NCBI GenBank assembly: GCA_002269645.1
Contig: NIVC01002656.1
Coordinates: forward strand, 1 to 64,000
DNA length: 64,000 bases
Direction: 5' to 3'
Origin: Macrostomum lignano
Lineage: Eukaryota
A program made the translations under genes and the position numbers. Below the pieces are notes generated by a model. The model made no database searches and was not told where the DNA came from. It saw only the letters and a program-made list of their open reading frames with translations. Each line of letters starts with the position of its first letter. Positions within the stretch are counted from its first letter, which is position 1. Shown one piece after another: positions 4,734 through 41,500 of this stretch.

Positions 4734-5255
4734 TTAGTTCCGGTCGGAATCTCCTGCGCTCAAGCCGCGCTTCCAGAACGGAGCTCGCTTCCAGAACGGA
4801 GCCCGCTTCCAGAATGGGGCGCGCTTCCAGAACGGAGCCCGCTTCCAAAACGGAGCTCGCTTCCAGAACGGAGCCCGCTTCCAGAATGGGGCGCGCTTCC
4901 AGAACGGAGCCCGCTTCCAAAACGGAGCTCGCTTCCAGAACGGAGCCCGCTTCCAGAACGGAGCTCGCTTCCAGAACGGAGCGCGCTTCCAGAACGGAGC
5001 CCGCTTCCAGAACGGAGCCCGCTTCCAAAACGGAGCTCGCTTCCAGAACGGAGCCCGCTTATTTTCGCCATGCAGTCCAGCAGTCCACCGAGCGATGATT
5101 TTCTTTGTCACATCCTCATTCAGGATACTACCGGTACTGCGCATCTCCCGTGTCAGGTGCCTGCTGGTGCTTTCCAAAGCGGAGGAGGCGTCATCCACTG
5201 CAACAACCGCTAGAAGGACCGATGCGAACAACAATGTCAGCGACAACCTTGGCAT
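4734..5255 (-). CDS. Neuropeptide precursor: signal peptide plus 16 x APFW flanked by dibasic KR sites
   Basis: ATG at 5255; hydrophobic signal MPRLSLTLLFASVLLAVVAV; (KRAPFW)16 then KRGLSAGDSDRN*. Variation among the 18-nt units is synonymous. AATAAA on the minus strand at 4600-4605 and 4486-4491. Confidence 0.9.
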   Translation of the reverse strand: MPRLSLTLLFASVLLAVVAVDDASSALESTSRHLTREMRSTGSILNEDVTKKIIARWTAGLHGENKRAPFWKRAPFWKRAPFWKRAPFWKRAPFWKRAPFWKRAPFWKRAPFWKRAPFWKRAPFWKRAPFWKRAPFWKRAPFWKRAPFWKRAPFWKRAPFWKRGLSAGDSDRN

Positions 5256-5606
5256 TGTAGCGCAGGTTTCACTGCAACATAGATTGAAAAATTCAAACGT
5301 ACCTGGTATATTACGAGCGTAAAAGTCTATACGATGACATCTGAACGTGAATGCATCAAAGACATGTTTACCTTAAAGGCTTTCGATACAGTCAATAATT
5401 CACAAAATATTTTGCCGCTAATCCGCCTTGTTGACTCAGAGTGGGGCGAGCGGAGCGACCGTGAATTACCGACTTTATAAGATGCTGGTGGATTGTCAGC
5501 CTTTGCCGATTTGCTGGAAGTCTGTGAGCTCTGGTTGGCTCGATGAATACGGATCTTTTGAGGGCTCGTGTCTTCGTTGTCTGCTTCCTGTCTTCTGAAA
5601 TTTTTT

Positions 5607-6975: not shown

Positions 6976-9900
6976 TGTAGTGAAACTACAAGAAAACTTA
7001 AGAGTTGAATGGAAATATATTTTATGAGTTTAACGATGTAAGGATTGGGGCGAGAAACTTAGCTGCGAGAAAGAACTGTAAAAGGAAATTAGTCTATGGC
7101 AAATTATAACAACTGAGTCGCAAATAAAAAGTACAACAAAATACCCATACGACTCCCCCCTCCAATTGCGGAGCTCGGAGAAAACAGACTGTAACCGAAG
7201 TCTTAAATGGTTGAATAGCTTATATGATCAAAACGAAGCGGGTAGGACAGTTGAAATAAATTCTACATGAGAAATCGAACATTAAAAAAAGAGAGAATAT
7301 TGAGAAAAACTGTCAGAAGACGTTATACGTTACAAAGGTTAATAATAAATGTAATCATTTTGGCGAAAAATAACAAAGAACTTGTCGGTTCGCTGTTTCA
7401 CGCGATACGGCCCTGAGTACGGCCCTCGAGCGGCGACCGCACACGATCGACCCGAACCCAGACGAATTCAGCCATTTTCAGGTCCTTGGGTACGTAGCTC
7501 CGTGGTTCGTGCGTCGTCGCATGTGGACTCGGTAGCTATGTCAGCAGTTCCTGCAGCCGCGTCCGAATATCCGTTGGGGCGAGTGGTTCGGAAGTCAGAA
7601 CGCGCGGAACCATCGGAAGCTCGCCGGTAACTCTGGTGAACGGTGATACTCCTTGATCGTCAGGTGCAACGTGCATCGCGAGAAGAGCCACAGGTAGGTC
7701 TGTCAGCCAATCATTGCCTCGAGGACGTAGCATCGTCTTCAGGGTGCGATGGGCTCGCTTGAACTTGCCATTGGTTTGAGGGTGGTACGTCGTTGTGCGT
7801 AATCGATGAAAACCAATTGATGACGAGACCGAGTGAAAGAATTCTGATTCGAACTGGCGCCCGCGATCAGTGATTACATACAGTGGCACTCCGTAGCGCG
7901 AGACCCAGGACGAGACGAATGCATGGGCGACTACTTCCGCGGTTATTGATTCCAGTGGTGTAGCTTCTAGCCAGCCAGTCGAGCGGTCGACCATCGTGAG
8001 AAGGTAGCGGGCAGACTGGTGGCCGAAGTGGTGGCATTAGCTGGTGGGAGTGGTCCTACAATATCGATGTGTACCACCTCAAAGCGATTTGATGGTAGTG
8101 CAAAGGCCTGTTGCGGGGAGACAGTGTGACGAGTTACTTTACTCCGTTGGCAGTCCTGGCAGTTCCAGCAGTAGGTCTTGATGGACTTGCACATTCCGGG
8201 CCAAAAGTAACGTTCTGTGATCAGTTTTGCTGTTTTACGGTAGCCGAAATGACCAAGTCGATGGAAGGAAGCAATCACGGCGTCGCGGAGAGACGGCGGA
8301 ATGATCGGGCGAGGATACAGCGTTGACGTCTCACACCAAACGACGACGTCTTTGTCCAGAGAATACAATCGAATATTTCGTGCCGGTGAGAACGACTCCG
8401 GTCGTTGTCCTTCAGCGATACTGGGCAGATCAACAGGGAATTGGCTTGATGGGGCAGCGACTACAGCGTCTGTTGCGATGTTGGACACGTGATTATTCAC
8501 TGGGAAGTCAGGCAGTCGAGAAAGGGCATCTGCTATTACGTTGTCTGCACCGCGAATGTACTGGAAATCTGCCACGTACTCGGAAAAAAACGGTCAAGTA
8601 GTCCTGATTGCGATCTGACGTAGTGGTGCGATTGGCGTGGAAGGCCTGAGCTAGTGGTTTATGATCGGTGAACAAGGTCACGATCCGTCCTTCAATGAGG
8701 CTGCGGAAGTGCAACACTGCCAGGTACGCTCGTACGCCGCGAGTAGTTCTCGGTCGAACGTGATGTACGTCCTTTGGGATGACGACAACTTCTTGCTGAA
8801 CATGCCGAGAGGTGACGTTCCGGTTGAAGAGGTTTGATGAAGAACGGCACCAACACAGTCGGCTGAGGCATCAGTGTACAGGTATCTCCCGCAGTACAGT
8901 TTGGGTCCGGATGATGCAGAAATAGTCTCTCTGAGAGAACTTGTTTGATGTTTTCGAAAGATTTCTGATGCTGCTCTGTCCATTGTAAGTTTCCTGCTGA
9001 CTGTAGTCTTGCAGCGGATAGATGCAGTCAGCGAAATTTGGAACGAATCGGTGGTAGAACCCGACGACGCCGAGGAAGCGCCGAAGTGCGTTCGAATCCG
9101 TGGGTGTCGGTCAGTCAGTGATTATTTGGATCTTCTTCTGGAGAGGTCTTATTCCTTCAGGAGTCACGCGGTGGCCAAGTAAATCTACCTCGGACTGAAA
9201 GAATTCACATTTCTTCAAGTGAACCTGCAGTCCGTGTGTTCTTAGGCGGTCTAAAACTTGTTCTAAATGCGAGTAGTGGTCCTCTCGAGTCTTCGAGAAT
9301 GTCAGGACATCAACGATGTAAGAGATAACGAATGACAGTCCGTGAAAAACAGAGTCGATGAAATGTTTAAATGTTTGTGCTGCATTCCTCAGGCCGAAGG
9401 GCATGCATGTGTACTCGAACAATCTAAACGATGTGGTGATAGCGGTTTTTCAGATATCCTCTTCTGCGATTAGAATTTGATGAAAGGCGCGAACAAGGTC
9501 TAACTTTGAAAACACAGTGCTTCCGTGTAGGTACCGAGTGAAGGTTTGAATATGTGGAACCGGATAGTTGTCCGGCTTTGTTGGTTTGTTCAGTTCACGA
9601 TAGTCACCGCACGGACGCCAGCCAGCTCCCTTGGTGCCATGTGGAGGGGTGACGCCCAAGCGCTTGAGGATGGTCTGAGGTAGCCGGCATCGATTAGCTG
9701 CTGAAACTCCTGCTTTACAGCCTGCAGTTTTGCAGGGTGCAGTTGCCGGGGTCGCAAGTGAACCGGTTGTCCACTACCAGTGTCTAGCCGGTGAACAGTG
9801 TCGTGCTTGACCTCTGAAGCTGGCGGAAGGGCTCCGCCTTCAACGAAAGAAAAACAATCTGCAAACTTTGTAAACAGCGTACTCGTCCGAGAATCCAGGT

Positions 9901-11520
9901 TGAGTGGCAGTTCTACCGACACAGTGAATGGGCCAGAATGAACATTTGAAATTGACAAGGTAACAGTGGACAGTCCTGTTTCTGAGTCTCGAACGTGTTT
10001 GCGCTGGCAATCGACAACTGGCAAATCGACAATCTGGCAATCGACAACTAACCCATGGTGAGCCAAGAAGTCGTAACCAATGATGGGTTTTACCACTGAG
10101 GCGACGAGAAAGGTCCACTGGAAGCGCGTCGCAAACGGTGGATTGAGACATCCAGTAGGACCGACCCGCAAACTGGTATGGCGGCTCCGGTAGCAGTAAT
10201 TAAACGAACGTTTGTATCTTGAACGAGTACGTTAACGAGGTGAGGTGGAACAATGGAAACCGAAGCTCCGGTATCCACAAGAAACTTGCTGTATGTATTG
10301 TTGATTTTAACATCTAACTCCAAACAGGTGGTCGATGGTATCTTGGCACTGCGCACCGCGACCTCGGTCGCAGTGCGACTTAGCTTTTTGGCTGTCGAGA
10401 AGGTGATGGTGAACGCGACTGAGATGGCGTTTTTTCATTAGGATGCGGCACTCGGATCGGAAGCGAGCTGTCCTTGGGAAACTGGCACCAGGGGCGACAC
10501 GACTATGGCGGCCATAGTAGAGGTGTGAGCGGCAAACGACGGGGCGTTGGCCAGGCTTAAATGGGTCTGTTCCAGTGGGCTTACCAGGTGCATGTCGTTG
10601 TGGAGCTTGCTCAGAACGCTGTTAGGGTGTCCGGTCTGCACCGGTCTGCTGAATTGGGCAAACCGTCGCTGGTGATGGAGAGCTAAGGCCTCTAACGATC
10701 AACATTGAGTCAGCAATCTCGGAAATTTGCTGGGATGACTGCTGTTGGAATCCCAAAAGTGCGATACGAAGGTCCTGGGGTAGACAGCGCATCAGCGTGG
10801 CGTTGAGGAGTTCCTCGTCGGGCTGTATCCGGCACTGCTCCATCTTGCTCCGGAGCTTGCGCATGAAAATTGATGGCTTGTCTCCTCCGAGGTCCGAGAC
10901 TTGCAATACTTCCGAAACCTTCTCCTGCTGGGACTTCTGCTGAGTTGATGTTATCGTTGTCTTCAATTGTTCGTACTGTTTTGGGAGTCTGAGCGGACAA
11001 ATGCAGGGCCGCGATATCTTCCGGTAGATGAGAAACTAGGTGGTAAAATTTGGCGGTCTCGTTGGTCACCCTGTTGAGCATAAATTGGGCCTCCAGCGTG
11101 AGGAACCATGCTTCCGGGTTGTTGCGATAGAAGATTGGCAGCTTCAGGTGGGCCAGGGAGACTATAGCGGTGTCGGCGGCGTTTCCTAATGCAGGTGTAA
11201 CCACTGGTGCGGCCGAACTTGGTGCGGCTTGCGTGGTTGTAGGTGGTGTAGGAGCGGAACTGTTGCTGGCACTGTCCGTCATTGGATTCGTCTTATGTGA
11301 GTACTGAGTATGCGGGTAATATCTTTCGCCGCCTCACCAGACCAATTTGTAGTAAAACTATAAGAAAACTTAAGAGTTGAATTGCAAATATATTTTATGA
11401 GTTAACGATGTAAGGATTGGGGCGAGAAACTTAACTGCGAGAAAGAACTGTAAAAAGAAAATTAGTCTGGCAAATTATGACAACTGAGTCGCAAATAAAA
11501 AGTATAACAAAATACCCATA
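6976..11520 (-). mobile_element. Ty3/Gypsy LTR retrotransposon (CsRn1-like), full length but decayed
   Basis: Direct LTRs at 6976-7149 and 11348-11520, with roughly ten differences by eye. PPT (plus-strand ctcccccctcc) at about 7153-7163. Gag KLPIFYRNNPEAWFLTLEAQF; protease FLVDTGASVS; RT WASPLHM, FSKLDL, MPFGLRNAAQTF, YIVDVL; RNase H TDASADCVGAVL, FDRELLA, FTDHKPL; integrase HHCC (H..GH, CQDCQ) and core (TDRGRQFES, YHPQTNG). Many frameshifts and stops. Candidate TSD GTAG (6972-6975 / 11521-11524). Confidence 0.95.
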
Positions 11521-12587
11521 GTAGGTAGACATGACCGCTGTGGTTTTCGACTCTGAGAGTCTGAGACCAAGTCTGAGACCAGACACTCTCTGGACAGGTG
11601 CAATTTCTGAGCAAGGTGAGTGTGGGTAGCCCTGGACTCTAAGCTCTCTGCCAAAGGCCTCGAAGAGGACATTTGTCGAAGGCCCCCTGAATGTTCAGGA
11701 AAAGCAATCAGTTCAAGACTTGATAGACGACACAGGCTAAACAGTCGAGATGTAAGTGTTTGGTATTTAAATTAAGCCGTATGTAATAATAATCGGAATT
11801 GATTCTTCAGATGGGATCCTGGGGCATTTTTCTTGACGCAATAATAATTTGGCGGTACCAGTAAATATAACCAAGAGAAGTAACACAACAGCTAATTGAC
11901 TCCTATAGTAACTAGTAGCGAGTAACTTCTAGTGTTCTTTGTGCGGACCTGGAGGAAATGGATGAAGCAACAAGTTAGTGAAACACATCTACCGATGAAA
12001 ATACCTCGTATTGGCTATCTCATGAAATGCCTGCATCGTTAAGGACAAAACAGAGCTAGACTAGCTAGAGCAACGCGTAACTCAATACGCGCAGCCTCAT
12101 CAAGGATGCGGTGGATCAGCTGATAGTGAGAGCTAGCAAAAACAATTAGATAGCTAAGTGAGTCGAAATTTAGTCATGTTAAAAATAATTTTTACAATTT
12201 TATCTGCAGAAACAGTTTTACATGCCCAGCTGAAAGAACTCACTCAGCTACAAAATTATAGTTGATTTTTTCAACTCGTGAATTTTACATGTATTTAGGT
12301 AAAGCACTCTTTTGAGAATCAAAAAAATGTTTGTTGTCATTTGTATGCATAGATAATCAATTCAAGAATTCCATTCGACAAATTGAATGCTCTGGTAGAT
12401 TAATGTTTGAATTAAGATAAAATTTTTCACAGAAAGGAATGTCAGTTTTTGTTTAAATTAAAATTCCATTGTAGCTACTGAAATTCAATAAAAACGACTT
12501 TAAAAAGCAAGAACCATTTTAATATTATGTGAGAAAAACATTTTACCGGCTATAATTAATTTTCTTGATTAAACAGACAAACAAGCG

Positions 12588-17270: not shown

Positions 17271-17684
17271 TCATTCGATCTCGTTGACATTTTTCACGAT
17301 CCAGTCTACCAGTCGCTGTTTGATGCTATCGTAGCTCATGTTCTCAAAGTTCAGGTCGAGTCGCAGCGGCTCGTACTCAAAACCGGACGGTGCCCACATC
17401 TGCACGTAGGGCACGGTGACTACGTCCTTCACCTCGGGTATGTTTGGCCGCTGACATTTTGACGTGTCAAGTGCAGACATTCGGATGGCCAGCTTGGCGT
17501 TAACCAGGCCCTTGGACTTCCACTGGCCTAATGACCATCTGCTCAGATCGTCGAAAATCGGTATGAGCTTACTCTGACAGATCTGGCAGGTCTGGGCGCT
17601 GTAGAGCAGCACCTCGACTCGCTGGCTTCTGTACTTGTAGCGCACAATCTCCTCTGCGCTGATCCAGGCTAGCGAGGCAGCCAT
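17271..17684 (-). CDS. Thioredoxin-fold protein with a CQIC motif, 137 aa
   Basis: gtcATGg start. VEVLLYSAQTCQICQSKLIPIFDDLS parallels Trx/PDI VxFYApWCxxCk.l.P.f; a VTVPYV cis-Pro-like segment follows. Confidence 0.65.
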   Translation of the reverse strand: MAASLAWISAEEIVRYKYRSQRVEVLLYSAQTCQICQSKLIPIFDDLSRWSLGQWKSKGLVNAKLAIRMSALDTSKCQRPNIPEVKDVVTVPYVQMWAPSGFEYEPLRLDLNFENMSYDSIKQRLVDWIVKNVNEIE

Positions 17685-20839: not shown

Positions 20840-23800
20840 TCACTGCTGCTGCGACTCCAAAAAAGTGTTTCCAATTCCATCAGTCAGCCAGTCGCCGTCG
20901 CCGCACGTTTCACCGACGGCAAGGACGCACGGCGTCCAAAGCGTCGCTCGGACGCGACGACCACGACGTCGACGCAAGCGCCGCTGGCGTTGAGCATTTG
21001 AGTGCTGTTGCTGCTGCTGCTGCTGCCTCTCCTCTTGCTGCTGATGAAGCAGAAACTCGTCCATGAGAGCGTCCGCGGCGCCGCGTCCTCCACCATCCAG
21101 TAGTTGCTGTTCGACGTCCTCAGCCTCGTCCTCGTCGGTGTCCACGGTGGGGCACCGGATTCGACACTCCGGATCGAGCGCCTGCCGCTCGTCTCGCCAG
21201 GCCAGGGAGTGGCCCCACACCTGCAGGCCGGGACTCTGGGCTGCCGCAGATTCAGCCGCCCAGCAGGGGCTGGCGAGGACACGGGTTCGAATCTCCGATT
21301 GAGGCGTCGAGGTTGCGTCGAGCGAACCGGCTGAGGCTGTATCGGAATGACAGAATGAGATTCTGAATGAATGAGAGCGAGTCACTCTTTAACAGCTATT
21401 CGTATCACTTTCCGCTCGCTCATCCACCCTCTCACCTTCTCCCCATCTCACACTCTCCCCATCTCACCCTCTCCCCATCTCACCCTCTCCCCATCTCACC
21501 CCTCCCCATCTCACCCTCTCCCCATCTCACCCTCTCCCCATCTCACCCCTCCCCATCTCACCCTCTCCCCATCTCACCCCCTCCCCATCTCACCCTCTCC
21601 CCATCTCACCCCCTCCCCATCTCACACTCTCCCCATCTCACCCCCTCCCCATCTCACCATCTCCCCATCTCACCCCCTCCCCATCTCACCCCCTCCCCAT
21701 CTCACCCTCTCCCCATCTCACCCCCTCCCCATCTCACCCCTCCCCATCTCACCCTCTCCCCATCTCACCCCCTCCCCATCTCACCCTCTCCCCATCTCAC
21801 CCCCTCCCCATCTCACCCTCTCCCCATCTCACCCCCTCCCCATCTCACCATCTCCCCATCTCACCCCCTCCCCATCTCACCCTCTCCCTATCTCACCCCC
21901 TCCCCATCTCACCATCTCCCCATCTCACCCCCTCCCCATCTCACCCCTCCCCATCTCACCATCTCCCCATCTCACCCCCTCCCCATCTCACCCTCTCCCC
22001 ATCTCACCATCTCCCCATCTCACCATCTCACACTCTCCCCATCTCACCCTCTCCCCATCTCACCCCCTCCCCATCTCACACTCTCCCCATCTCACTATCT
22101 CCCCATCTCACCATCTCACACTCTCCCCATCTCACACTCTCCCCATCTCACACTCTCCCCATCTCCCCATCTCACACTCTCCCCATCTCACACTCTCCCC
22201 ATCTCCCCATCTCACACTCTCCCCATCTCCCCATCTCACACTCTCCCCATCTCCCCATCTCACACTCTCCCCATCTCCCCATCTCACACTCTCCCCATCT
22301 CACACTCTCCCCATCTCACACTCTCCCCATCTCCCCATCTCACCATCTCCCCATCTCACCCTCTCCCCATCTCACACTCTCCCCATCTCCCCATCTCCCC
22401 ATCTCCCCATCTCACCATCTCCCCATCTCACCATCTCCCCATCTCACCCCCTCCCCATCTCACCATCTCACACTCTCCCCATCTCACCCTCTCCCCATCT
22501 CACCCCCTCCCCATCTCACACTCTCCCCATCTCACCATCTCCCCATCTCACCATCTCACACTCTCCCCATCTCACACTCTCCCCATCTCACACTCTCCCC
22601 ATCTCACACTCTCCCCATCTCACACTCTCCCCATCTCCCCATCTCACACTCTCCCCATCTCACACTCTCCCCATCTCACACTCTCCCCATCTCACACTCT
22701 CCCCATCTCACACTCTCCCCATCTCACACTCTCCCCATCTCCCCATCTCACCCCCTCCCCATCTCACCCTCTCCCCATCTCACACTCTCCCCATCTCCCC
22801 ATCTCACCATCTCCCCATCTCACCATCTCCCCATCTCACCCTCTCCCCATCTCACCCTCTCCCCATCTCACCCTCTCCCCATCTCCCCATCTCACCATCT
22901 CCCCATCTCACCATCTCCCCATCTCACCCTCTCCCCATCTCCCCATCTCACCATCTCCCCATCTCACCCTCTCCCCATCTCACCCTCTCCCCATCTCACC
23001 CTCTCCCCATCTCACACTCTCCCTATCTCACTCTCTCACCGTCGCACCCTCTCTCACTCTGTCATAACCTCTAATCTATTCTTCAATCAATCATATTTTC
23101 CTATAAAACCCAACAAATACGGTTTTATAGATAGCCCTTGAAACTATTAATGTAGGGACCCGAGCCGATTTTAAGACACCTAAAAATTTATATATCCACA
23201 CGAAGAATCACGGAGCTCTTAGGAGGGAGGCCCAGTCAATCATGCTGAGAGATAATTACTAATGTTCAATTTACACCCCTATATATAGAGAATAGCCTAT
23301 ATATGAGTCAACACAGTTATAACAATCTCACCAAGAAAGACTTAAGAGTTAAAATCCTCATCAATAAACACCCTATACTCAAAGCTGCACATCCTTTAAA
23401 TATTTTAGAGTCCGAATTTCGAATAATAAGTGCCTGTGTCTATTAGCTGACTTCCTAAAATCCTTTAATCTAACCAAGACTCAAGCTTAGCTCAACACAC
23501 ACGCAGTTCTGCAGCTTGAATTTAATCTGTGTCTGAAACTCTGAAGGTTTCTCTACATACTCGTATAGATTTATACAAGTGAATTATTTGATTTTGGGCA
23601 CAGAGACAGGCGGCTGAATCTATTTATTCATTTATGGCTACTCATGCTGGACTGCTTGGCGCCTTATTTGACTCATCCTGCTTGGCGCCTCATTTGACTC
23701 ATCCTGCATGCTTGGCGCCTCATTTGACTCATCCTGCATGCTTGGCGCCTCATTTGACTCATCCTGCATGCTTGGCGCCTCATTTGACTCATCCTGCTTG

Positions 23801-26800
23801 GCGCCTCATTTGACTCATCCTGCTTGGCGCCTCATTTGACTCATCCTGCTTGGCGCCTCATTTGACTCATCCTGCTTGCTTGGCGCCTCATTTGACTCAT
23901 CCTGCTTGGCGCCTCATTTGACTCATCCTGCTTGGCGCCTCATTTGACTCATCCTGCTTGGCGCCTCATTTGACTCATCCTGCTTGGCGCCTCATTTGAC
24001 TCATCCTGCTTGGCGCCTCATTTGACTCATCCTGCTTGGCGCCTGATGCATGACCAACCTGACCAAAGCTACAGTTGAAATCAAGCTTAGCAGCTTCTTT
24101 TCAGTAAAATACGCAGGCAAAATGCCTTATAACAACTCAAAACTCACAGTTGCCGCTGCTGTCGTTGCACTGCAGCTGCTGAAGTCCTTCATCATCTCCT
24201 GGTACAGCCGCACTATGACAGAGCAGTATCACTTTAGCCGGCTTCCGACTATTCAAGTGCGGGTTGGCTCGAGCTTCGCTGGCCTCGAGTTCGCGCAGCA
24301 CCTCCGCCAGATTCTTTATGTACTGGATGGCGTATTTCAGCGTCTCCACTTTGGACAGCTTCCGATCCTCCTTCTGCTCGATCGGCAGTCGGCGTCGGAG
24401 ACCGTCGAACGCGGCATTTATTGAGCGCATTCGTTTGCGCTCGCGCTGATTGGCCGCTCGGCGTTGGTGCATCCGACGGGAGCGGGCGTCCGTCATCTGC
24501 CTGCGATGCGGCCGCTGCTGCTGATGCTCCTGCGGCGCAGCTGCCTTGATACACTTTGCGCTATCCTTGATTGATGCCTGCCACTCGATCGGCTGATCCA
24601 GATCGATGCTTGGATAGACAGCTTGATGCTGAGCCATCGGATGCTGGGAAATGTACTCAACAAACTGATGCTGATTCTGGTCGGTAAAGTTTGAGAACTG
24701 CTCAATAGGATAGCCACAGGATTGATGATGCTGATTGACAGGCATTTGAAACTCTGTTGGGTAGTATGGGGCCTCACGGTTGGGCTGGAATAAGATTTCG
24801 GGGTAAAAAAATGCCCAATAAAACGACCACTGCAGTGTGATAGAGGAACACCTCAGCTGCTAGGGGAATATTTTCCTAAAATGAAATCGGTTTGTCCTGA
24901 CCAGTTATGCCTAATTATGTTAATTAGCTAGCATAATTAATTTATGTACTCGAAATTAGCCGCTTCCTTCATGTGAAATCGCCTAAAAACTGCTTTTATG
25001 AGCTGTGTTCGCATTAAAATCTGTAGCTATTTAATATCAATATATATTAGTATTAGTTATAGAAAGTGAGCACTTTGTAGTTCATATTATTAGTACTCAA
25101 AAATTAAAGAAAAAAATAGAAATATCCAGCGTTTCAGAGAAAGGGTCTCTTCAAAACTGAGCAGCAGGTTGGACATTTGGATAGCACCTATTAAAATTTA
25201 TATCAATAAAATTAAATATATGATATAATTATAATATAACTTATATAGCAATTCATGATCAGTTTATGTTTTAGCATGCAGGTACTACGAGATACATGTC
25301 ACAGATAAAGAAGAGAATATTGCTAATCTGAGCAGAAAAGTCTGGGTCAAAAGTTTTTTTAGATATTGAATATTTCTTTTGAATTACTTCCATTGCCAAT
25401 AGAATCAATATTCAAACTTTTGGATGTTGAACTTTTAGATAGATCCCTTCACAAATTGTCATGGAAGTATTGCTCCTATTATACTGTTTTTCTTCATCCA
25501 TGTAGTAGTGCTGGTAACAACAGCATGCAGCAAAGTAGGCTGCACAACACGACAGTAAATTTAGTCAAATGAAAAGCCATCACCGCATTAAATATGTCAC
25601 TGCATTAGATATGCCAGCTGTTATACGCCACTGTTGCCTGCAGCAGCCTATTGCCGAACTGTGGGTGATCGGCTGGCAGCCTGTAGCGCTGCCAAGTCCG
25701 CTGGAAATCCGAGTGTGCGCTCTCTACTGCCTGTTCGCTACAAGTTCCAAGTGCACGACCAGTGCGATGGCAGAAGTCGCTCACGTGGCAAAGGAGAACA
25801 TGCACTTTGGGCGTGACAGTCAATCCCAGTGCCAGGTATGCAGCTCCAAAATTTTCGATTCGCTCACCAAAATCCGGGACCAATTCCTGGCCAAATGCTC
25901 CATTAACAACGCTGTTGAAGCAAATCAAGCACTGGGCGAAGGGCTGTAGTTCATGAGGAACGTCTTCAAGAAGAACCTCAGCCATCAGCAGCAATTTGCG
26001 ACAAGCGTTGCCTTCCATTGTGCCGCCGCGGTACCCCGCTCGCACGATGCCGTGAGATTGTAGCCATGCAAATCCGCGGTCTTCGCCCCAAGCTTCGTTC
26101 AAAGAATCAAGCAATTTGTTACTGATTCCGAGCAGAAGATGCAGTTCAGGAGGGGGCAGCAGCATCAGCACTTCCTCGTCATCATCACCAGCCAGCAGCG
26201 GCAGATTGACACAGTTCATGAACTGCTTCGCTCTGCTCCAAACTCGTCCAGCAGAATTGAACTCCTGCACTTTCTGCCGAATTCTACCGAGGGTTCGTGG
26301 CCTGCCGCTTGTCGTCAGTGGTGCAGTAGACTCGCAGTACGGACATGGGTGAGCACACGAGTGAGGCTGGAGTCCGCAGAGAATGTTTGCTAGCTTCATG
26401 TCTGTGACAGTCACAGCAGACAGCTCTACCACAGAAACAGCCTGTAGCAGTGTTTTTACATTTTTGTACGTTTCTGAGATGTCGTTGACGATTGCGAGAA
26501 CTATAATTTTTTTCACTCCGGCGTCATTGAACTGTGAGTGGCGTCGCACACTTTCGTGAACTGCAGCAGCACCGCCGTGCACCTGATGGTCAGACGTGGA
26601 CGCAACGACAGACACGCAAATCTTAAAAAAACCTCCGCCACCATCAAGCCCCAGCCGGCATTCGAAGTTAGAGGCTCCTCGCTGTTGGACAATAAATTCA
26701 ATGAGGCGCGAAGCATCAGTGCAGAGGACAGCAGCACGATCACCAATGGCAGAAGATGACAGCTCGAATTGAAGTGTCTTAAGTTTAAAAAAGTCTTCCA

Positions 26801-28296
26801 ATACACGATTCTGAGTCACTAATGAATCTTTCAGCCTAGATTCAACTGCTCGCGAAGAGCTTGCACCAGCTCTCAGTACCTGCGCGACCTGCAGCGTCTG
26901 ATTGTTGCTAAGATTCAGCACACCTTTCAGTGTCTTCATTGTGCTGATAGAAGTTGCAGGGAAGCTGGTTGCTCCATTGCCCACACTAGCACCAACAGTC
27001 ACGCGCATTGGGCGACCACCTTCCATCCGTGACAAGGAAACACAGCTGGAGCCACTTGCTGCAGCCTTTGTTGATATGCAGCTGCTGGCCAGCATGTCCT
27101 GCGTATCAGGACTGACACCCTGCTGCAGATTAGTCAGTCGCGTTGCTCTTGAGCAGTTGTGTTTCTTGCCACGGCCAATTTCTGATCGACAAAACGAGCA
27201 AATGAACTGTGGTTGTGCTGCATCAGCTGCCGACAATGGATGTTTTCGAGGTCGTCCTGGACGAGATGCAGCAGCGCCAGTACTGTAAGAGCTGACAGAA
27301 GTTGTCAACTTGCTGCTGTTCTTCGATCTGGCAAGCTCGCACAGTTCGCAAGAGCAATGCGGATTATTTCTTGTGGACGGAGGCAGACTCTGCAGGTCGG
27401 CAACCATCTGCTCATAGTTTAGCCTTGGTGGCAACTCACGAGGCGCTGGACCAGATAGAGATGAAATGATGCGTCGACACCCGTCACACAAGCCGGTCGG
27501 CAGAATGTGCTGTACAGAGGCGAAATTCGGCACCAAATCCTCAGCAGAAAAATTGGCTACCGACCAAATTGAGCGCGAGGCTTTCCGCAAACAGAGCAAA
27601 CACAGACTCTCTCTGCACTCCTCATGTGATTTTTTTGCATTCGGCATATTCTGAAATTCTGAAATTGATCGCTGGCCACTGATGCAAGAGACAAATGTTT
27701 TGAATTTGGCCTTGACTTGAGTATTGGTTGTGATATTTATTTGAGTGCTGATATGAGTTGGCTATGAAAGTTGCAATAATCAATGTACATCTGACAGTCC
27801 GACGCATATGAAATAGAACAGTACGAACGTACGTACGTTCATGTGCTAATTTCGATATTGAGCAAAGAGAGTGCGTGAGACCTAGAGCACAACAGTTCAT
27901 ATTGAAGCTAGAGCAGAGCATTGGCTGCTGCATACATTCTGATTAGCAACTGCTCATCCAGTATAATAGCAGTTTATATCATAAAAACATAAAAGCAGAC
28001 CAGGCCATAAAAGCAGTTTTTAGGCGATTTCACACGAAGGAAGCGGCTAATTTCGAGTACATAAATTAATTATGCTAGCTAATTAACATAATTAGGCATA
28101 ACTGGTCAGGACAAACCGATTTCATTTTAGGAAAATATTCCCCTAGCAGCTGAGATGTTCCTCTATCACACTGCAGTGGTCGTTTTATTGGGCATTTTTT
28201 TACCCCGAAATCTTATTCCAGCCCAACCGTGGCCTCTGTGTGGAATAGCGATTCGCCCACTGCGCTCCATTGCTGCTGCTGGTTGTGAAGTTCCAT
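20840..28296 (-). CDS. PTF1A: PTF1A bHLH transcription factor; join(28296-28232, 24770-24148, 21336-20840), exon 1 interrupted by a Chapaev transposon
   Basis: bHLH QRRAANQRERKRMRSINAAFDGLRRRLP...LSKVETLKYAIQYIKNL. PTF1A-specific AKVILLCH motif, and the C1 motif GHSLAWRDERQ in exon 2. Phase-1 donor (24148|gtgagt) matches a phase-1 acceptor (atacag|21336). Removing the transposon and one TSD copy gives a 1185-nt ORF starting MELHNQQQQW (394 aa). Confidence 0.9.
21420..23055. repeat. C/T-rich minisatellite (ctccccatctcacc variants) in the PTF1A intron
   Basis: Directly visible; the ORFs here are artefacts. Confidence 0.95.
23650..24045. repeat. 26-bp minisatellite (cttggcgcctcatttgactcatcctg)n in the PTF1A intron
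   Basis: About 14 units. Confidence 0.95.
24775..28231 (-). mobile_element. Chapaev-type DNA transposon, apparently intact and autonomous (3457 bp)
   Basis: 226-bp TIRs (24775-25000, 28006-28231; 2 mismatches seen), CAC...GTG termini, 4-bp TSD GCCT (24771-24774, 28232-28235), and one uninterrupted 680-aa transposase ORF. Confidence 0.92.
25605..27647 (-). CDS. Chapaev transposase (RAG1/Transib-related DDE), 680 aa
   Basis: N-terminal Chapa Zn finger H-x7-C-x2-C...LP-x3-C-x2-C, followed by CxCxxC and CxxC-x8-HxC. Catalytic-core motifs LGLDGGG (D), VTDMKLANILCGL (D), CPYC, PELHLLLGI, EGNACRKLL, TPKVHVLLCHV and SEQAVESAH (E). Confidence 0.9.
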   Translation of the reverse strand: MPNAKKSHEECRESLCLLCLRKASRSIWSVANFSAEDLVPNFASVQHILPTGLCDGCRRIISSLSGPAPRELPPRLNYEQMVADLQSLPPSTRNNPHCSCELCELARSKNSSKLTTSVSSYSTGAAASRPGRPRKHPLSAADAAQPQFICSFCRSEIGRGKKHNCSRATRLTNLQQGVSPDTQDMLASSCISTKAAASGSSCVSLSRMEGGRPMRVTVGASVGNGATSFPATSISTMKTLKGVLNLSNNQTLQVAQVLRAGASSSRAVESRLKDSLVTQNRVLEDFFKLKTLQFELSSSAIGDRAAVLCTDASRLIEFIVQQRGASNFECRLGLDGGGGFFKICVSVVASTSDHQVHGGAAAVHESVRRHSQFNDAGVKKIIVLAIVNDISETYKNVKTLLQAVSVVELSAVTVTDMKLANILCGLQPHSCAHPCPYCESTAPLTTSGRPRTLGRIRQKVQEFNSAGRVWSRAKQFMNCVNLPLLAGDDDEEVLMLLPPPELHLLLGISNKLLDSLNEAWGEDRGFAWLQSHGIVRAGYRGGTMEGNACRKLLLMAEVLLEDVPHELQPFAQCLICFNSVVNGAFGQELVPDFGERIENFGAAYLALGLTVTPKVHVLLCHVSDFCHRTGRALGTCSEQAVESAHSDFQRTWQRYRLPADHPQFGNRLLQATVAYNSWHI

Positions 28297-35540: not shown

Positions 35541-38500
35541 CTACTGCTGGCTCGTGCCCCGCTTGTCATCTGAAATTTATTTAGCAAACCAATTCATTTT
35601 TCAGATATCAAACCATCATTACAGAATGATAGCTAATAGGAATCTGCACATTATCCACCCAAATCTGCACATTACCCAACACAATCTGCACATTACCCAG
35701 CACAATCTGCACGTTACCCAATCCATTCTGCACATTACCCAACACAATCTGCACATTACCCACCGCAATCTGCACATTACCCACCCAATCTGCACATTAT
35801 CCACCCCAATCTGCACATTACCCACCCAATCTGCACATCACCCAGCACAATCTGCACATTACCCAATCCATTCTGCACATTACCCAACACAATCTGCACA
35901 TTAACCACCGCAATCTGCACATTACCCACTCCATTCTGCACATTACCCACCGCAATCTGCACATTACCCACCGCAATCTGCACATTACCCAATCCATTCT
36001 GCACATTACCCAACACAATCTGCACACTACCCAACACAATCTGCACATTACCCACCGCAATCTGCACATTACCAACCACAATCTGCACATTAACCACCAT
36101 AATCTGCACATTACCCCGTCGCTCACCCAAGCCGCGCAGCAGCCTCCGGCTAGTCGGGCTCAACGCGCGATCGGCTTCGCAGCCACCTGCGGTGCCCCGC
36201 CTCCTCCCTTGCAGTCGGTTGTCGCCGGCTTTGCCTTTGATCTGGCCGTCGGCATCGGCGTCGCCGTTACCTTCCCCGGCGCTATCGCCGACTTCGTCGT
36301 CGCCAACGGCCTCCTTGTCAGCCGGCCGGCGGCCCAGCAGGCTCTGGATGTCGGCCAGGGCGGCGCGGATGTCGTCGGCGCCGGCGCCGCCGTTGGATTT
36401 GCCTTCGTCGACAGGTGGCGGCTTTCGGCGAGGCTGCGGCGGCGCCTGCGGCTGTTGCTGGGGCAGCTGCTGGCGAAGCACCTGCTGGCAAGCCGCCAGC
36501 TGCGCACGGAGTCGGCGATTCGCAGCCTCGGCCTGCGTCGGTTTTTTTGAATATTTTAAACAAAGAATCCTCAGATCCCAATCTAGATCCTCAGATCCCA
36601 ATCTATAATCCTCAGATCCGAATCTAAAATCCTCAGATCATAATCTAAAATCCTCAGATCCCAATCTAAAATCCTCAGATCCCAATCTATAATCCTCAGA
36701 TCCGAATCTAAAATCCTCAGATCATAATCTAAAATCCTCAGATCCCAATCTAAATTCCTCAGATCCGAATCTAAAATCCTCAGATCCCAATCTAGATCCT
36801 CAGATCCCAATCTATAATCCTCAGATCCGAATCTAAATCCTCAGATCATAATCTAAAATCCTCAGATCCCAATCTATAATCCTCAGATCCGAATCTAAAA
36901 TCCTCCGATCAGAATCTAAAATCCTCAGATCCCAATCTAAATCCTCCGATCAGAATCTAAAATCCTCAGATCCCAATCTAAAATCCTCAGATCCCAATCT
37001 AAATCCTCCGATCAGAATCTAAAATCCTCAGATCCCAACTTCAAATCCCTGATCAAATGGGATTTGATTTGAGGTTGGGATCATGGAATTTGAGATTGGG
37101 ATCAAATGGGATTTGATTTTAAATCAAATGGGATTTGATTTCAAACTTCAAATCCCCTAATCTAAATCTTAAATCCCATGATTCCAATCTTAAATTTTTA
37201 GATCCCTATTTCAAATCCTTAGATCCCAATCTAAAATCCCCAGATTTTGCACCTGTCGAGCCGAGTTCGTGGCCTCCTTGCACTGCCTCGCCCAGGTGTC
37301 CAGCTCGGCCACCAGCCTCTCGTTGTCAGCCTCCAGAGCCATCAGCCGGCGCTCCTGCAGCTGTTGCTGCCGGCGTTGCTGCTTTTTGGCCGCGGCAGAG
37401 GCGGCCGAGGCGGACGGGGCTGCCTGGTGACGGCGGGCAGCTGCTGCCGTGGCCTCCTCCGCCTCCTCCTTTGCTTTGAGCGCGTCCCTGGATGGGGAGG
37501 ACAATTAGCGACGGGTTTGTGCGGGAGTTCAAACTGGGATTCGAGGTTGGGATCATAGGATTTGAGATTGGGATCATAGGATTTGAGATTGGGATCATAG
37601 GATTTGAGATTGGGATCATAGGATTTGAGATTGGGATCATAGGATTGGAGATTGGGATCATAAGATTTGAGGTTGGGACCATAGGATTTGAGATTGGGAT
37701 CATATGATTTGAGATTGGGATCATATGATTTGAGATTGGGATCATAGGATTTGAGATTGGGATCATAGGATTTGAGATTGGGATCATAGGATTTGAGATT
37801 GGGATCATAGGATTTGAGATTGGGATCATAGGATTTGAGATTGGGATCATAGGATTTGAGGTTGGGACCATAGGATTTGAGATTGGGATCATAAGATTTG
37901 AGGTTGGGATCATAGGATTTGAGATTGGGATCATATGATTTGAGATTGGGATCATATGATTTGAGATTGGGATCATAGGATTTGAGATTGGGATCATAGG
38001 ATTTGAGATTGGGATCATAGGATTTGAGATTGGGATCATAGGATTTGAGATTGGGATCATAGGATTTGAGATTGGGATCATAGGATTGGAGATTGGGATC
38101 ATAAGATTTGAGGTTGGGACCATAGGATTTGAGATTGGGATCATATGATTTGAGATTGGGATCATATGATTTGAGATTGGGATCATAGGATTTGAGATTG
38201 GGATCATAGGATTTGAGATTGGGATCATATGATTTGAGATTGGGATCATAGGATTTGAGATTGGGATCATAGGATTTGAGATTGGGATCATAGGATTTGA
38301 GGTTGGGACCATAGGATTTGAGATTGGGATCATAAGATTTGAGATTGGGATCATAGGATTGGAGATTGGGATCATAAGATTTGAGGTTGGGACCATAGGA
38401 TTTGAGATTGGGATCATATGATTTGAGATTGGGATCATATGATTTGAGATTGGGATCATAGGATTTGAGATTGGGACCATAGGATTTGAGATTGGGATCA

Positions 38501-41500
38501 TAGGATTTGAGATTGGGATCATAGGATTTGAGATTGGGATCATAGGATTTGAGGTTGGGACCATAGGATTTGAGGTTGGGACCATAGGATTTGAGATTGG
38601 GATCATAAGATTTGAGGTTGGGATCATAGGATTTGAGATTGGGATCATATGATTTGAGATTGGGATCATATGATTTGAGATTGGGATCATAGGATTTGAG
38701 ATTGGGATCATAGGATTTGAGATTGGGATCATAGGATTTGAGATTGGGATCATAGGATTTGAGATTGGGATCATAGGATTTGAGATTGGGATCATAGGAT
38801 TGGAGATTGGGATCATAAGATTTGAGGTTGGGACCATAGGATTTGAGATTGGGATCATATGATTTGAGATTGGGATCATATGATTTGAGATTGGGATCAT
38901 AGGATTTGAGATTGGGATCATAGGATTTGAGATTGGGATCATATGATTTGAGATTGGGATCATAGGATTTGAGATTGGGATCATAGGATTTGAGATTGGG
39001 ATCATAGGATTTGAGGTTGGGACCATAGGATTTGAGATTGGGATCATAAGATTTGAGATTGGGATCATAGGATTTGAGATTGGGATCATATGATTTGAGA
39101 TTGGGATCATATGATTTGAGATTGGGATCATAGGATTTGAGATTGGGATCATAGGATTTGAGATTGGGATCATAGGATTTGAGGTTGGGACCATAGGATT
39201 TGAGATTGGGATCATATGATTTGAGATTGGGATCATAGGATTTGAGATTGGGATCATAGGATTTGAGGTTGGGACCATAGGATTTGAGATTGGGATCATA
39301 TGATTTGAGATTGGGTTCATAGGATTTGAGATTGGGATCATAGGATTTGAGATTGAGATCATAGGATTTGAGATTGGGATCATAGGATTTGAGATTGGGA
39401 TCATAGGATTTGAGATTGGGATCATAGGATTTGAGATTGGGATCATATGATTTGAGATTGGGATCATATGATTTGAGGTTGGGACCATAGGATTTGAGAT
39501 TGGGATCATATGATTTGAGATTGGGATCATAGGATTTGAGATTGGGATCATAGGATTTAAGAAAGGGATCATGGGACTTGAGATTGGGATCATATGATTT
39601 GAGATTGGGATCATAGGATTTGAGATTGGGATCATAGGATTTAAGAAAGGGATCATGGGACTTGAGATTGGGATCCAATGGGATTTGATACTGCGATAAT
39701 GGGATTCGAGGTTGGGATCATGGTATTCGAGGTTGGGATCATGGGATTTGAGATAGGGATAATGGGATTGGAGGTTGGGATCATGGGATTCGAGGTAAGG
39801 ACCATGGGATTTGATATTGGGATCACGAGATTCGAGATAGGGATCATGGGATTTGAGATTGGGATCAACTGGGATTTCAGACCTAGCCAGAGCCAGCTCC
39901 GCCCGGGTGTCCTTCAGTCTGGCGGCGAGTTCGGCCGCCCGCTTGCGCAGCGCCTCGGCCTCCCGGCCGCTGGCCACCCGAGCAGCTTCAGAGTCGGCCC
40001 GCAGCGCGGCCACCTCCAGCCGCGAGTCCTTGAGCTCCAAGTACAGCGAGTCGCGTTCAGCGGCGGCTCGCTCGAGCTCGGCAACGCCAAGGCGACCGCG
40101 AGACTCCAAAGCCGCCAGCTGGCCGCTGCGGTCCTCGAACAGGCTGACGAGGTGCCTGCGGATGCAAATGGATCGTCGGCTATTGAAGTTTGCCATTGTG
40201 TTGAAAACTTTGCAGTGTAAACTGCTGTCTCTGCTACAGCTCCAGCTCCCGAATTTTCACCCAGACAGTCAGCCGCGTTCAAAGCCGGTTCTATGCACCG
40301 GAAATCCACCCCGAGGCCCCCTACAAAATCTCAAGAAAATCCGCCCCCAAACCCGCCAGAAAATCCGCCTCTAAACGCTCCAGAGAATCCGCCCCTAAAC
40401 CCTCCAGAGAATCTGCCCCTAAACCCTCCAGAAAATCCGCCCCTAAACCCTCCAGAGAATCCGCCCCCAAACCCGCCAGAAAATCTGCCCCTAAACCCTT
40501 CAGAGAATCCGCCCCTAAATCCGCCAGAAAATCCGCCCCTAAACCCTCCAGAGAATCCGCCCCTAAACCCTCCAGAAAACCCGCCCCTAAACCCTCCAGA
40601 GAATCCGCCCCTAAACCCTCCAGAGAATCCGCCCCTAAAGCCGCCAGAAAATCCCCGCTAAACCCTCCAGAGAATCCGCCCCTAAACCCTCCAGAGAATC
40701 TGCCCCTAAACCCTCCAGAGAATCCGTCCCTAAACCCTCCAGAGAATCTGCCCCTAAACCCTCCAGAGAATCCGCCCCTAAACCCTCCAGAGAATCTGCC
40801 CCTAAACCCTCCAGAGAATCCGTCCCTAAACCCGGCAGAAAACCCGCCCCTAAACCCTCCAAAGAATCCACCCCTAAACCCGCCAGAAAATCTGCCCCTA
40901 AACCCGCCAGAAAATCCGCCCCTAAACCCTCCAAAGAATCCACCCCTAAACCCTCCAGAGAATCTGCCCCTAAACCCTCCAGAGAATCCGCCCCTAAACC
41001 CTCCAGAGAATCCGCCCCTAAACCCGGCAGAAAACCCGCCCCTAAACCCTCCAGAGAATCTGCCCCTAAACCCTCCAGAGAATCCGCCCCTAAAGCTGCC
41101 AGAAAACCCGCCCCTAAACCCTCCAAAGAATCCACCCTAAACCCGCCAGAAAATCTGCCCCTAAACCCTCCAGAGAATCCGCCCCTAAACCCTCCAGAGA
41201 ATCCGCCCCTAAACCCGGCAGAAAACCCGCCCCTAAACCCTCCAGAGAATCCGCCCCTAAACCCTCCAGAGAATCCGCCCCTAAACCCGGCAGAAAACCC
41301 GCCCCTAAACCCTCCAGAGAATCTGCCCCTAAACCCTCCAGAGAATCCGCCCCTAAAGCTGCCAGAAAACCCGCCCCTAAACCCTCCAAAGAATCCACCC
41401 CTAAACCCGCCAGAAAATCTGCCCCTAAACCCTCCAGAGAATCCGCCCCTAAACCCTCCAGAGAATCCGCCCCTAAACCCGGCAGAAAACCCGCCCCTAA

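Follow-up and report, generated by a model that had tools for sequence, protein, structure and literature searches.

Does the tandem array carried by a single open reading frame (ORF) near the start of contig NIVC01002656.1 of the flatworm Macrostomum lignano encode a secreted peptide precursor, and if so, to which family of precursors does that protein belong? The stretch that we analyzed (positions 1 to 64,000 of the contig, assembly GCA_002269645.1; here called the window) consists of tandem repeat over ~22 kb of its 64 kb (35%), spread over more than 30 arrays (periods, 4 to 69 bp), and many of these give long spurious ORFs. Because so many arrays are open in some frame, an open frame is by itself meaningless here. 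We conclude that the gene at positions 4734 to 5255 is almost certainly real and that, judged from its sequence, it is best classed, within a flatworm family of precursors whose peptides end in Phe-Trp with a free carboxyl group (FW-OH), as a member with a raised copy number, that is, as a multicopy neuropeptide-type prohormone. The reading that we consider probable is that this FW-OH family member is cut into 16 copies of the tetrapeptide Ala-Pro-Phe-Trp (APFW-OH), which would likely serve as a neuropeptide or peptide hormone.

The ORF lies on the minus strand (the preliminary description of this DNA had left the strand unstated) and runs uninterrupted from its ATG through 173 codons to a TAA stop, so that the coding sequence (CDS) is intronless. 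The 173-aa translation reads, in order, MPRLSLTLLFASVLLAVVAVDDASSALESTSRHLTREMRSTGSILNEDVTKKIIARWTAGLHGEN, exactly 16 copies of KRAPFW, and KRGLSAGDSDRN, followed by the stop; the protein begins MPRLSLTLLFASVLLAVVAVDDASS, and the stretch ahead of the array ends LHGEN. The layout described for it from the outset, a signal peptide and a spacer followed by (KR-APFW)16, is what this translation displays, with 17 dibasic Lys-Arg (KR) sites flanking the repeated short peptides in the classical manner of a prohormone. The signal peptide was called by hand from hydropathy and the −3/−1 rule: the N terminus has an n/h/c layout with a basic MPR n-region, a hydrophobic peak (mean Kyte-Doolittle value of 2.97 over the 12-aa window spanning residues 9 to 20), and a −3/−1 small-residue site, VVA/VD, after A19. 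There is no Cys among the 173 residues and no Gly within or ahead of the repeats. Matching of the 18-nt unit pattern gave 15 matches against 0 expected, and Tandem Repeats Finder placed the array at 4763 to 5060, with a period of 18, 16.5 copies, and 0% indels.

We looked closely at the nucleotide differences among the 18-nt units, all of which had been described as synonymous. This proved correct. The 16 units vary at 15 sites, of five distinct kinds, and every one of these falls in a third codon position and is silent in the KRAPFW frame (the codon variants are Arg CGG/CGA/CGC, Ala GCT/GCC, Pro CCG/CCA, and Phe TTC/TTT, as described). Units 8 to 11 are the same as units 12 to 15, a 72-nt higher-order duplication, and the 15 variant sites are therefore not independent events. 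Of the 54 single-base changes that the consensus unit allows, only 12 are synonymous, and by our own calculation the probability that five independent kinds of change would all be silent is ~5e-4 per frame. The same analysis of seven other minisatellites of the window found ~7 to 45% “silent” changes in any frame. Thus, the view that the variation sets this array apart from the minisatellites near it is borne out as far as the proportion of silent changes goes, but the variation cannot by itself decide between the strands: one antisense frame (QNGARF) is equally silent for these variants, since its third positions coincide with those of the KRAPFW frame. We therefore set aside the argument that all-silent variation proves which strand is coding. 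No start codon precedes the array in the antisense QNGARF frame, and we assign the gene to the minus strand on account of its ATG and signal peptide, its stop, its relatives, and the gene call at a paralogous locus.

That second Macrostomum locus (L036, on contig NIVC01000312.1) is collinear with the window at 85 to 94% identity and carries, at the expected position, a called gene whose 197-aa product starts from the same ATG. L036 covers 158 codons of the 197-aa gene (the homeologous contig NIVC01002477.1 stops short of the gene), and the product would contain ~20 units if its tail matches that of the window copy. Over the 195 nt of CDS encoding the N terminus and pro-region, the two copies are 97% identical, with six differences, four of them nonsynonymous and two synonymous. 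The 300 bp upstream are ~95% identical, with TATAAA and both of the splice-like sites described below intact; the background identity is 85 to 92% in most flanking collinear blocks and 93.9% in one gene-containing block. In the paralogous array, synonymous variants are frequent and three nonsynonymous units (APFS, SPFW, and TPFW) occur once each, as would be expected, on the sequence, if purifying selection acted together with concerted evolution. The two loci also have in common a thioredoxin-like gene: the window ORF at 17271 to 17684 (137 aa) corresponds to an NCBI protein whose 90%-cluster representative is PAA85626.1 (BOX15_Mlig018679g3), and a near-identical gene is present in L036. Around the thioredoxin-like ORF, NIVC01002656.1 at 7271 to 27684 is 100% identical to the same positions of the window.

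Does the precursor have relatives beyond Macrostomum? A word-indexed protein search with the window protein found one, P0001, and the family surfaced only with an exhaustive HMMER run and profile searches. An exhaustive phmmer search of 1.84 billion representatives returned 133 matches, mostly unrelated repeat proteins, among which four or more FW[KR][KR] motifs occurred only in small signal-peptide proteins, namely, Spirometra KAL7063363.1, Dibothriocephalus latus VDK82978.1, the Logan contig P0102, and P0001. Two profile searches added a further D. latus protein (P0141), Schistocephalus solidus P0142 and P0143, Taenia solium TsM_000200800, Taenia crassiceps TcWFU_000704, Echinococcus granulosus ECG_00934, and a taeniid Logan contig. 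We define the flatworm FW-OH propeptide family from P0074, P0141 to P0147, and P0102; no member has a Pfam match. Its tapeworm members follow a common plan, in which a signal peptide and an acidic spacer precede three to six KR-separated peptides ending in FW (SPHFW, HPAFW, SPAFW, SAFW, ASFW, SDFW, YGNQAFW, and RENFW), and they end directly in ...FW-stop. The relatives are 102 to 143 aa long, with similar N termini. P0102 shares the taeniid pro-region motif EKLL-E--PPE-L-EY, from which it is probably another cestode. The preliminary description did not recognize APFW as belonging to any named family; that view no longer stands, since tapeworm FW members are already in NCBI and UniRef, and the UniRef name of E. 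granulosus ECG_00934 is “Neuropeptide,” which shows that the nature of this protein has already been recognized by someone.

Two features of the relatives bear directly on the predicted product. First, G[KR]R motifs are absent from the window protein and from 12 of 12 relatives, which upholds the earlier proposal of a nonamidated tetrapeptide. Second, the metagenomic relative P0001 bears out the proposal that the peptide is under selection. P0001 is a 104-aa ORF on a 660-bp contig with 30% GC and its own TATAAA and AATAAA; after a signal peptide, it encodes QFW, APFW, DPFW, EAFW, APFW, EAFW, EPFW, and EAFW, each followed by KR, and then DGN-stop. Across these eight units, F-W-K-R is invariant over changing codons (TTC/TTT, AAA/AAG, and AGA/CGT/AGG/CGA) whereas the first two residues vary, which shows selection on the FW-KR part.

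The window protein shares with the tapeworm precursors a signal peptide, a spacer that lacks structural Cys, KR-flanked FW peptides, the absence of a Gly amide donor before the basic pair, and the phylum. At 173 aa, it is a small precursor of the expected kind (~100 to 200 aa), and it carries 16 APFW-KR units where three FW-ending peptides, each before Lys-Arg or a stop, would be enough. Alignment of its repeat part with the family alignment by hhalign gave an E value of 2.8e-12 and a probability of 97.6%. It differs in that the tapeworm precursors hold three to six different peptides of 4 to 7 residues, whereas the Macrostomum genes hold 16 to 20 copies of one tetrapeptide, and in that it does not terminate at the last FW but runs on into KR-GLSAGDSDRN, much as P0001 runs on into KR-DGN. 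No relevant paper on APFW or related FW peptide strings was retrieved by full-text literature searches, no functional study of the tapeworm FW genes was found in the open literature searched, and FW peptides were not found in a helminth neuropeptide review.

Several further observations concern proteins resembling these precursors. P0148, P0149, and P0150 (L038 to L040; Logan/ENA) represent a second FW precursor type, with five or six longer peptides ending in [SA]FW between KR sites and a conserved C-terminal domain (...YE[LV]IDENTN...KEE-RR-D...PEFNPTGW-stop, ending RPEFNPTGW) that has no Pfam match. The Logan contigs P0011 and P0140 encode a 571-aa precursor with a Cys-rich N-terminal domain and 25 KR-flanked nonamidated peptides ending in Phe-Tyr (APFY, AAFY, ALFY, GLSAFY, SPDDLSSFY, and others); it ends in ...SSFY-stop, has the string KRGLSA in common with the tail of the window protein, and resembles the FW family with FY in place of FW. 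In D. latus VDK82978.1 (P0138), the end of one FW precursor (...KRAPFW) is followed by a new Met and signal peptide and a second, degenerate copy. This looks like a misfusion of two tandem genes, so FW genes may be tandemly duplicated in D. latus. The automatic UniRef name of S. solidus P0142 and P0143, “RxLR effector protein,” is almost certainly a misannotation.

The pathway that we propose for the window protein is a conventional one. The signal peptide would send the protein into the secretory pathway and be removed at about A19/V20, and all 17 Lys-Arg pairs would be cut on their C-terminal side by a kexin-type prohormone convertase. A pc2 homologue is present in the nervous system of M. 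lignano, and its knockdown is lethal (Arbore et al. 2015, PMC4490696). A carboxypeptidase E/D-type enzyme would then trim the Lys and Arg, leaving 16 identical Ala-Pro-Phe-Trp peptides, along with the N-terminal pro-fragment and GLSAGDSDRN. Because no Gly precedes the KR pairs, the peptides would not be amidated and would keep a free carboxyl end. As FW is conserved at the C terminus of all products of the family, it is the likely pharmacophore and receptor determinant. Ends such as an N-terminal X-Pro or X-Ala resist general aminopeptidases, from which they would probably protect the FW peptides. Most likely, the peptide is a neuropeptide or peptide hormone that works through a receptor; by analogy, we infer that the precursor is transcribed and processed in this way, expressed in neuronal or endocrine cells, and linked to receptor signaling. 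Unequal crossing-over would have driven the copy number in Macrostomum to 16 here and ~20 at the second locus.

Several points weigh against this reading. Aligned with the family alignment by hhalign, the pro-region (residues 1 to 65) gave no signal (E value of 0.046, probability of 1%), so common descent is argued from motif, architecture, and phylum only; the similarity is confined to the FWKR repeats and could formally reflect convergence with the tapeworm FW precursors. Such silence of the pro-region is common, and indeed normal, for precursors of neuropeptides and short peptides. The dN/dS of the two Macrostomum pro-regions, with four nonsynonymous changes against two synonymous ones, is uninformative, and the exact 173-aa product is absent among the annotated gene products of the collection searched, in which only the paralogue is called. 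FW peptides were not found in planarian supplements or in a Schistosoma cercaria paper and its supplements, so that the family is patchy. Finally, a tetrapeptide is very small for a ligand of a G-protein-coupled receptor (GPCR), though APGWamide, FMRFamide, and achatin are precedents.

Among the alternatives, the one that survives best, though we think it unlikely, is that the protein is secreted by gland, epidermal, prostate, or adhesive cells rather than by neurons, either as a source of released pheromone, seminal-fluid, or defense peptides or as an uncleaved polycationic, Trp/Arg-rich antimicrobial or adhesive polymer with a net charge of about +33. The composition of the window protein would suit such a role, with 42 Lys and Arg residues against 9 Asp and Glu and with 17 Trp in 173 aa; furin-type cleavage at KR sites also takes place in secretory cells that are not neuronal, and antimicrobial activity is frequent among Trp/Arg-rich peptides. 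The relatives, however, do not keep the charge: P0001 has units EAFW, EPFW, and DPFW, and the tapeworm precursors have acidic spacers. The part that the relatives do conserve is the KR-bounded X-FW, and the direct ...FW-stop ending of the tapeworm precursors points to cleaved peptides and not to a polymer. The UniRef naming of the E. granulosus member likewise speaks for a neuropeptide.

The preliminary description placed the peptide near molluscan APGWamide and annelid RGWamide, and the corresponding explanation, that the APFW precursor is a derived, deamidated orthologue of the spiralian APGWamide/RGWamide precursor, seems to us very improbable. The likeness lies in the peptides: both systems (APGWamide in molluscs; RGWamide in annelids, nemerteans, and brachiopods) have multicopy, KR-flanked, very short peptides ending in Trp, and APGW and APFW are both tetrapeptides of the form A-P-x-W. 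Furthermore, the Tritonia APGWamide precursor (P0069) gave a weak phmmer match (E value of 4e-6), although this match is due to the repeated KRAPxW string. The APGWamide/RGWamide precursors are defined by an amidated GW followed by Gly, two C-terminal Cys residues separated by 20 to 30 aa, and a phase-0 intron that falls between the two (Thiel et al., preprint 10.1101/2021.03.03.433790). The APFW precursor has none of these: its repeat, APFW-KR, lacks Gly, its 10-aa tail and the rest of the protein are free of Cys, and its CDS is one uninterrupted ORF. Moreover, its actual relatives conserve FW and not P-x-W, as AFW, SFW, NFW, and HFW occur. We therefore did not retain the homology.

Other known precursors resemble this one more distantly. 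Achatin-like precursors of molluscs and annelids (GFAD/GFFD type) also release a multicopy nonamidated tetrapeptide from between dibasic sites, but the achatin motif is G-[FY]-x-[DN], to which A-P-F-W does not conform, and its bioactivity needs L-to-D isomerization of residue 2; by sequence, the achatin motif is unrelated to X-X-F-W. Fungal Kex2-processed repeat precursors, such as UstA with its 16 copies of YAIG, likewise have a signal peptide followed by ~16 KR-separated tetrapeptides, and fungal precursors of ribosomally synthesized and posttranslationally modified peptides need clustered DUF3328/tyrosinase enzymes. We rejected a fungal origin, as the host is an animal, M. lignano, and the relatives are flatworm genes. 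Within the flatworms, nonamidated KR-bounded peptides are usual in npp genes, for example, npp-29 (KR-MLYW-KR), npp-43, and npp-26 (PMC11196405 supplement). The T. crassiceps genes npp-29 and npp-43 (...ATLAYF/ASLAYF) resemble the FW precursors in being secretory and in having KR-bounded peptides with aromatic free-carboxyl ends, but each encodes one or two peptide copies, and the npp-29 peptide adjoins the signal peptide and is followed by a long C-terminal domain (PMC11196405). The 30 npp genes of that supplement (a set derived from Koziol et al. 2016) do not include the T. crassiceps FW gene (P0146), which suggests that the FW family lies outside the numbered npp set.

That the gene is a noncoding 18-bp minisatellite open in a frame by accident, as the more than 30 arrays of the window with their many long spurious ORFs might suggest, and as might a metagenome DNA scan for FWKRxxFWKRxxFWKR in which almost all of the 27 loci found were short accidental frames of 18-bp minisatellites without a Met or signal peptide (that is, noise), is barely credible, because the array follows a unique, nonrepeat N terminus of 65 aa with a signal-peptide profile, has no Gly or Cys in its repeats, varies only at third positions, unlike every other array tested, has a paralogue that is conserved above background and called as a gene, and has counterparts of the same architecture in annotated proteins of six tapeworm species.

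The features of the gene are collected in Table 1. Upstream of the ATG are a candidate TATA box and two splice-like sites, which may delimit an intron in the 5′ untranslated region (UTR) or, for the one nearer the ATG, may mark a trans-splice acceptor; both sites are present in the paralogue too, despite 7-nt indels between them.

Table 1. Features of the APFW precursor gene, with window positions
Feature	Position	Strand	Basis and details
APFW prepropeptide, complete CDS	4734..5255	−	ORF list and translation; start context ACAATGC, with A at −3
Predicted signal peptide, residues 1-19 (MPRLSLTLLFASVLLAVVA / VDD)	5199..5255	−	Sequence reading, predicted
Pro-region/spacer, residues 20-65 (46 aa)	5061..5198	−	Translation; 0 Cys, one extra KK at 51-52
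16 tandem 18-nt units, AAG CGN GCY CCR TTY TGG (Lys-Arg-Ala-Pro-Phe-Trp)	4773..5060	−	Translation and pattern match
Last KR site, C-terminal peptide GLSAGDSDRN, and stop	4734..4772	−	Translation
Candidate TATA box, TATAAA, ~220 nt upstream of ATG	5474..5479	−	Sequence reading; kept in paralogue; putative function
Candidate 100-nt 5′ UTR intron (AAG/GTAAAC ... TGTTGCAG/TG)	5272..5371	−	Sequence reading, predicted
Alternative to the 5′ UTR intron: AG as putative trans-splice acceptor, 16 nt before ATG	5273-5272	−	
Putative polyadenylation signal, AATAAA, 128 nt past stop codon	4600..4605	−	Sequence reading, predicted

The remainder of the window contains mobile elements, genes, and further arrays. 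The APFW gene is preceded, 1.7 kb upstream, by a degraded retrotransposon (6976 to 11832, 4.9 kb, with minus-strand ORFs at 7536 to 8575 and 9590 to 11282); it has an integrase zinc-binding domain and an rve core split by a frameshift, together with a DUF7041 gag-like ORF, and is absent from L036. Also absent from L036 is a 680-aa intronless ORF on the minus strand (25605 to 27647), which has no Pfam match and is present as five identical protein copies in GCA_002269645.1. A 51-nt probe from its upstream flank matches all five copies exactly, and because the flanks are identical too, the ORF probably represents a DNA transposon that was active recently or a domesticated element. A bHLH transcription-factor gene (20840 to 24745, minus strand; HLH domain with an E value of 4e-17; called 364-aa product) has its intron(s) filled by 16-bp and 26-bp minisatellites at 21430 to 23053 and 23640 to 24044. 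From ~35700 to 48100, on the minus strand, coiled-coil ORF fragments (CCDC158-like, E value of 3e-10) are parted by very long minisatellites with periods of 21, 24, 35, and 24/32 bp, several of which stay open in frame and are fused with the coiled-coil exons in the ORF list.

What the locus means can be considered at two levels. As a piece of DNA, it is a clean case of a coding minisatellite held in frame amid noncoding minisatellites, with variation kept silent by selection. As a peptide gene without annotation in M. lignano, it is linked here with proteins labeled hypothetical or “Neuropeptide” in Echinococcus, Taenia, Spirometra, and diphyllobothriids, and this link defines a pharmacophore that is simple and conserved, namely, X-Phe-Trp ending in a free carboxyl. 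The family is uncharacterized and spans free-living and medically important flatworms, while the mechanism itself is conventional. We suggest, tentatively and with more doubt than confidence, that Phe-Trp-OH peptides are an undescribed flatworm-wide signaling family, extending from the early-branching Macrostomum to Echinococcus and Taenia, with relatives in environmental animals, that has been amplified to 16 to 20 identical copies per gene at at least two Macrostomum loci. It is pure speculation that an FW receptor might be found within the protostome expansion of aromatic-peptide (RFamide/Wamide, GPR139/142-related) GPCRs discussed by Thiel et al. Parasitic flatworms offer neuropeptide systems as candidate drug targets, but most flatworm precursors are uncharacterized and without an assigned receptor. 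M. lignano is free-living, amenable to RNA interference and transgenesis, and encodes the peptide at a very high copy number, so that function and receptor are directly approachable. If the family is as we suggest, M. lignano would offer a genetically tractable model for a peptide system that it has in common with medically important tapeworms.

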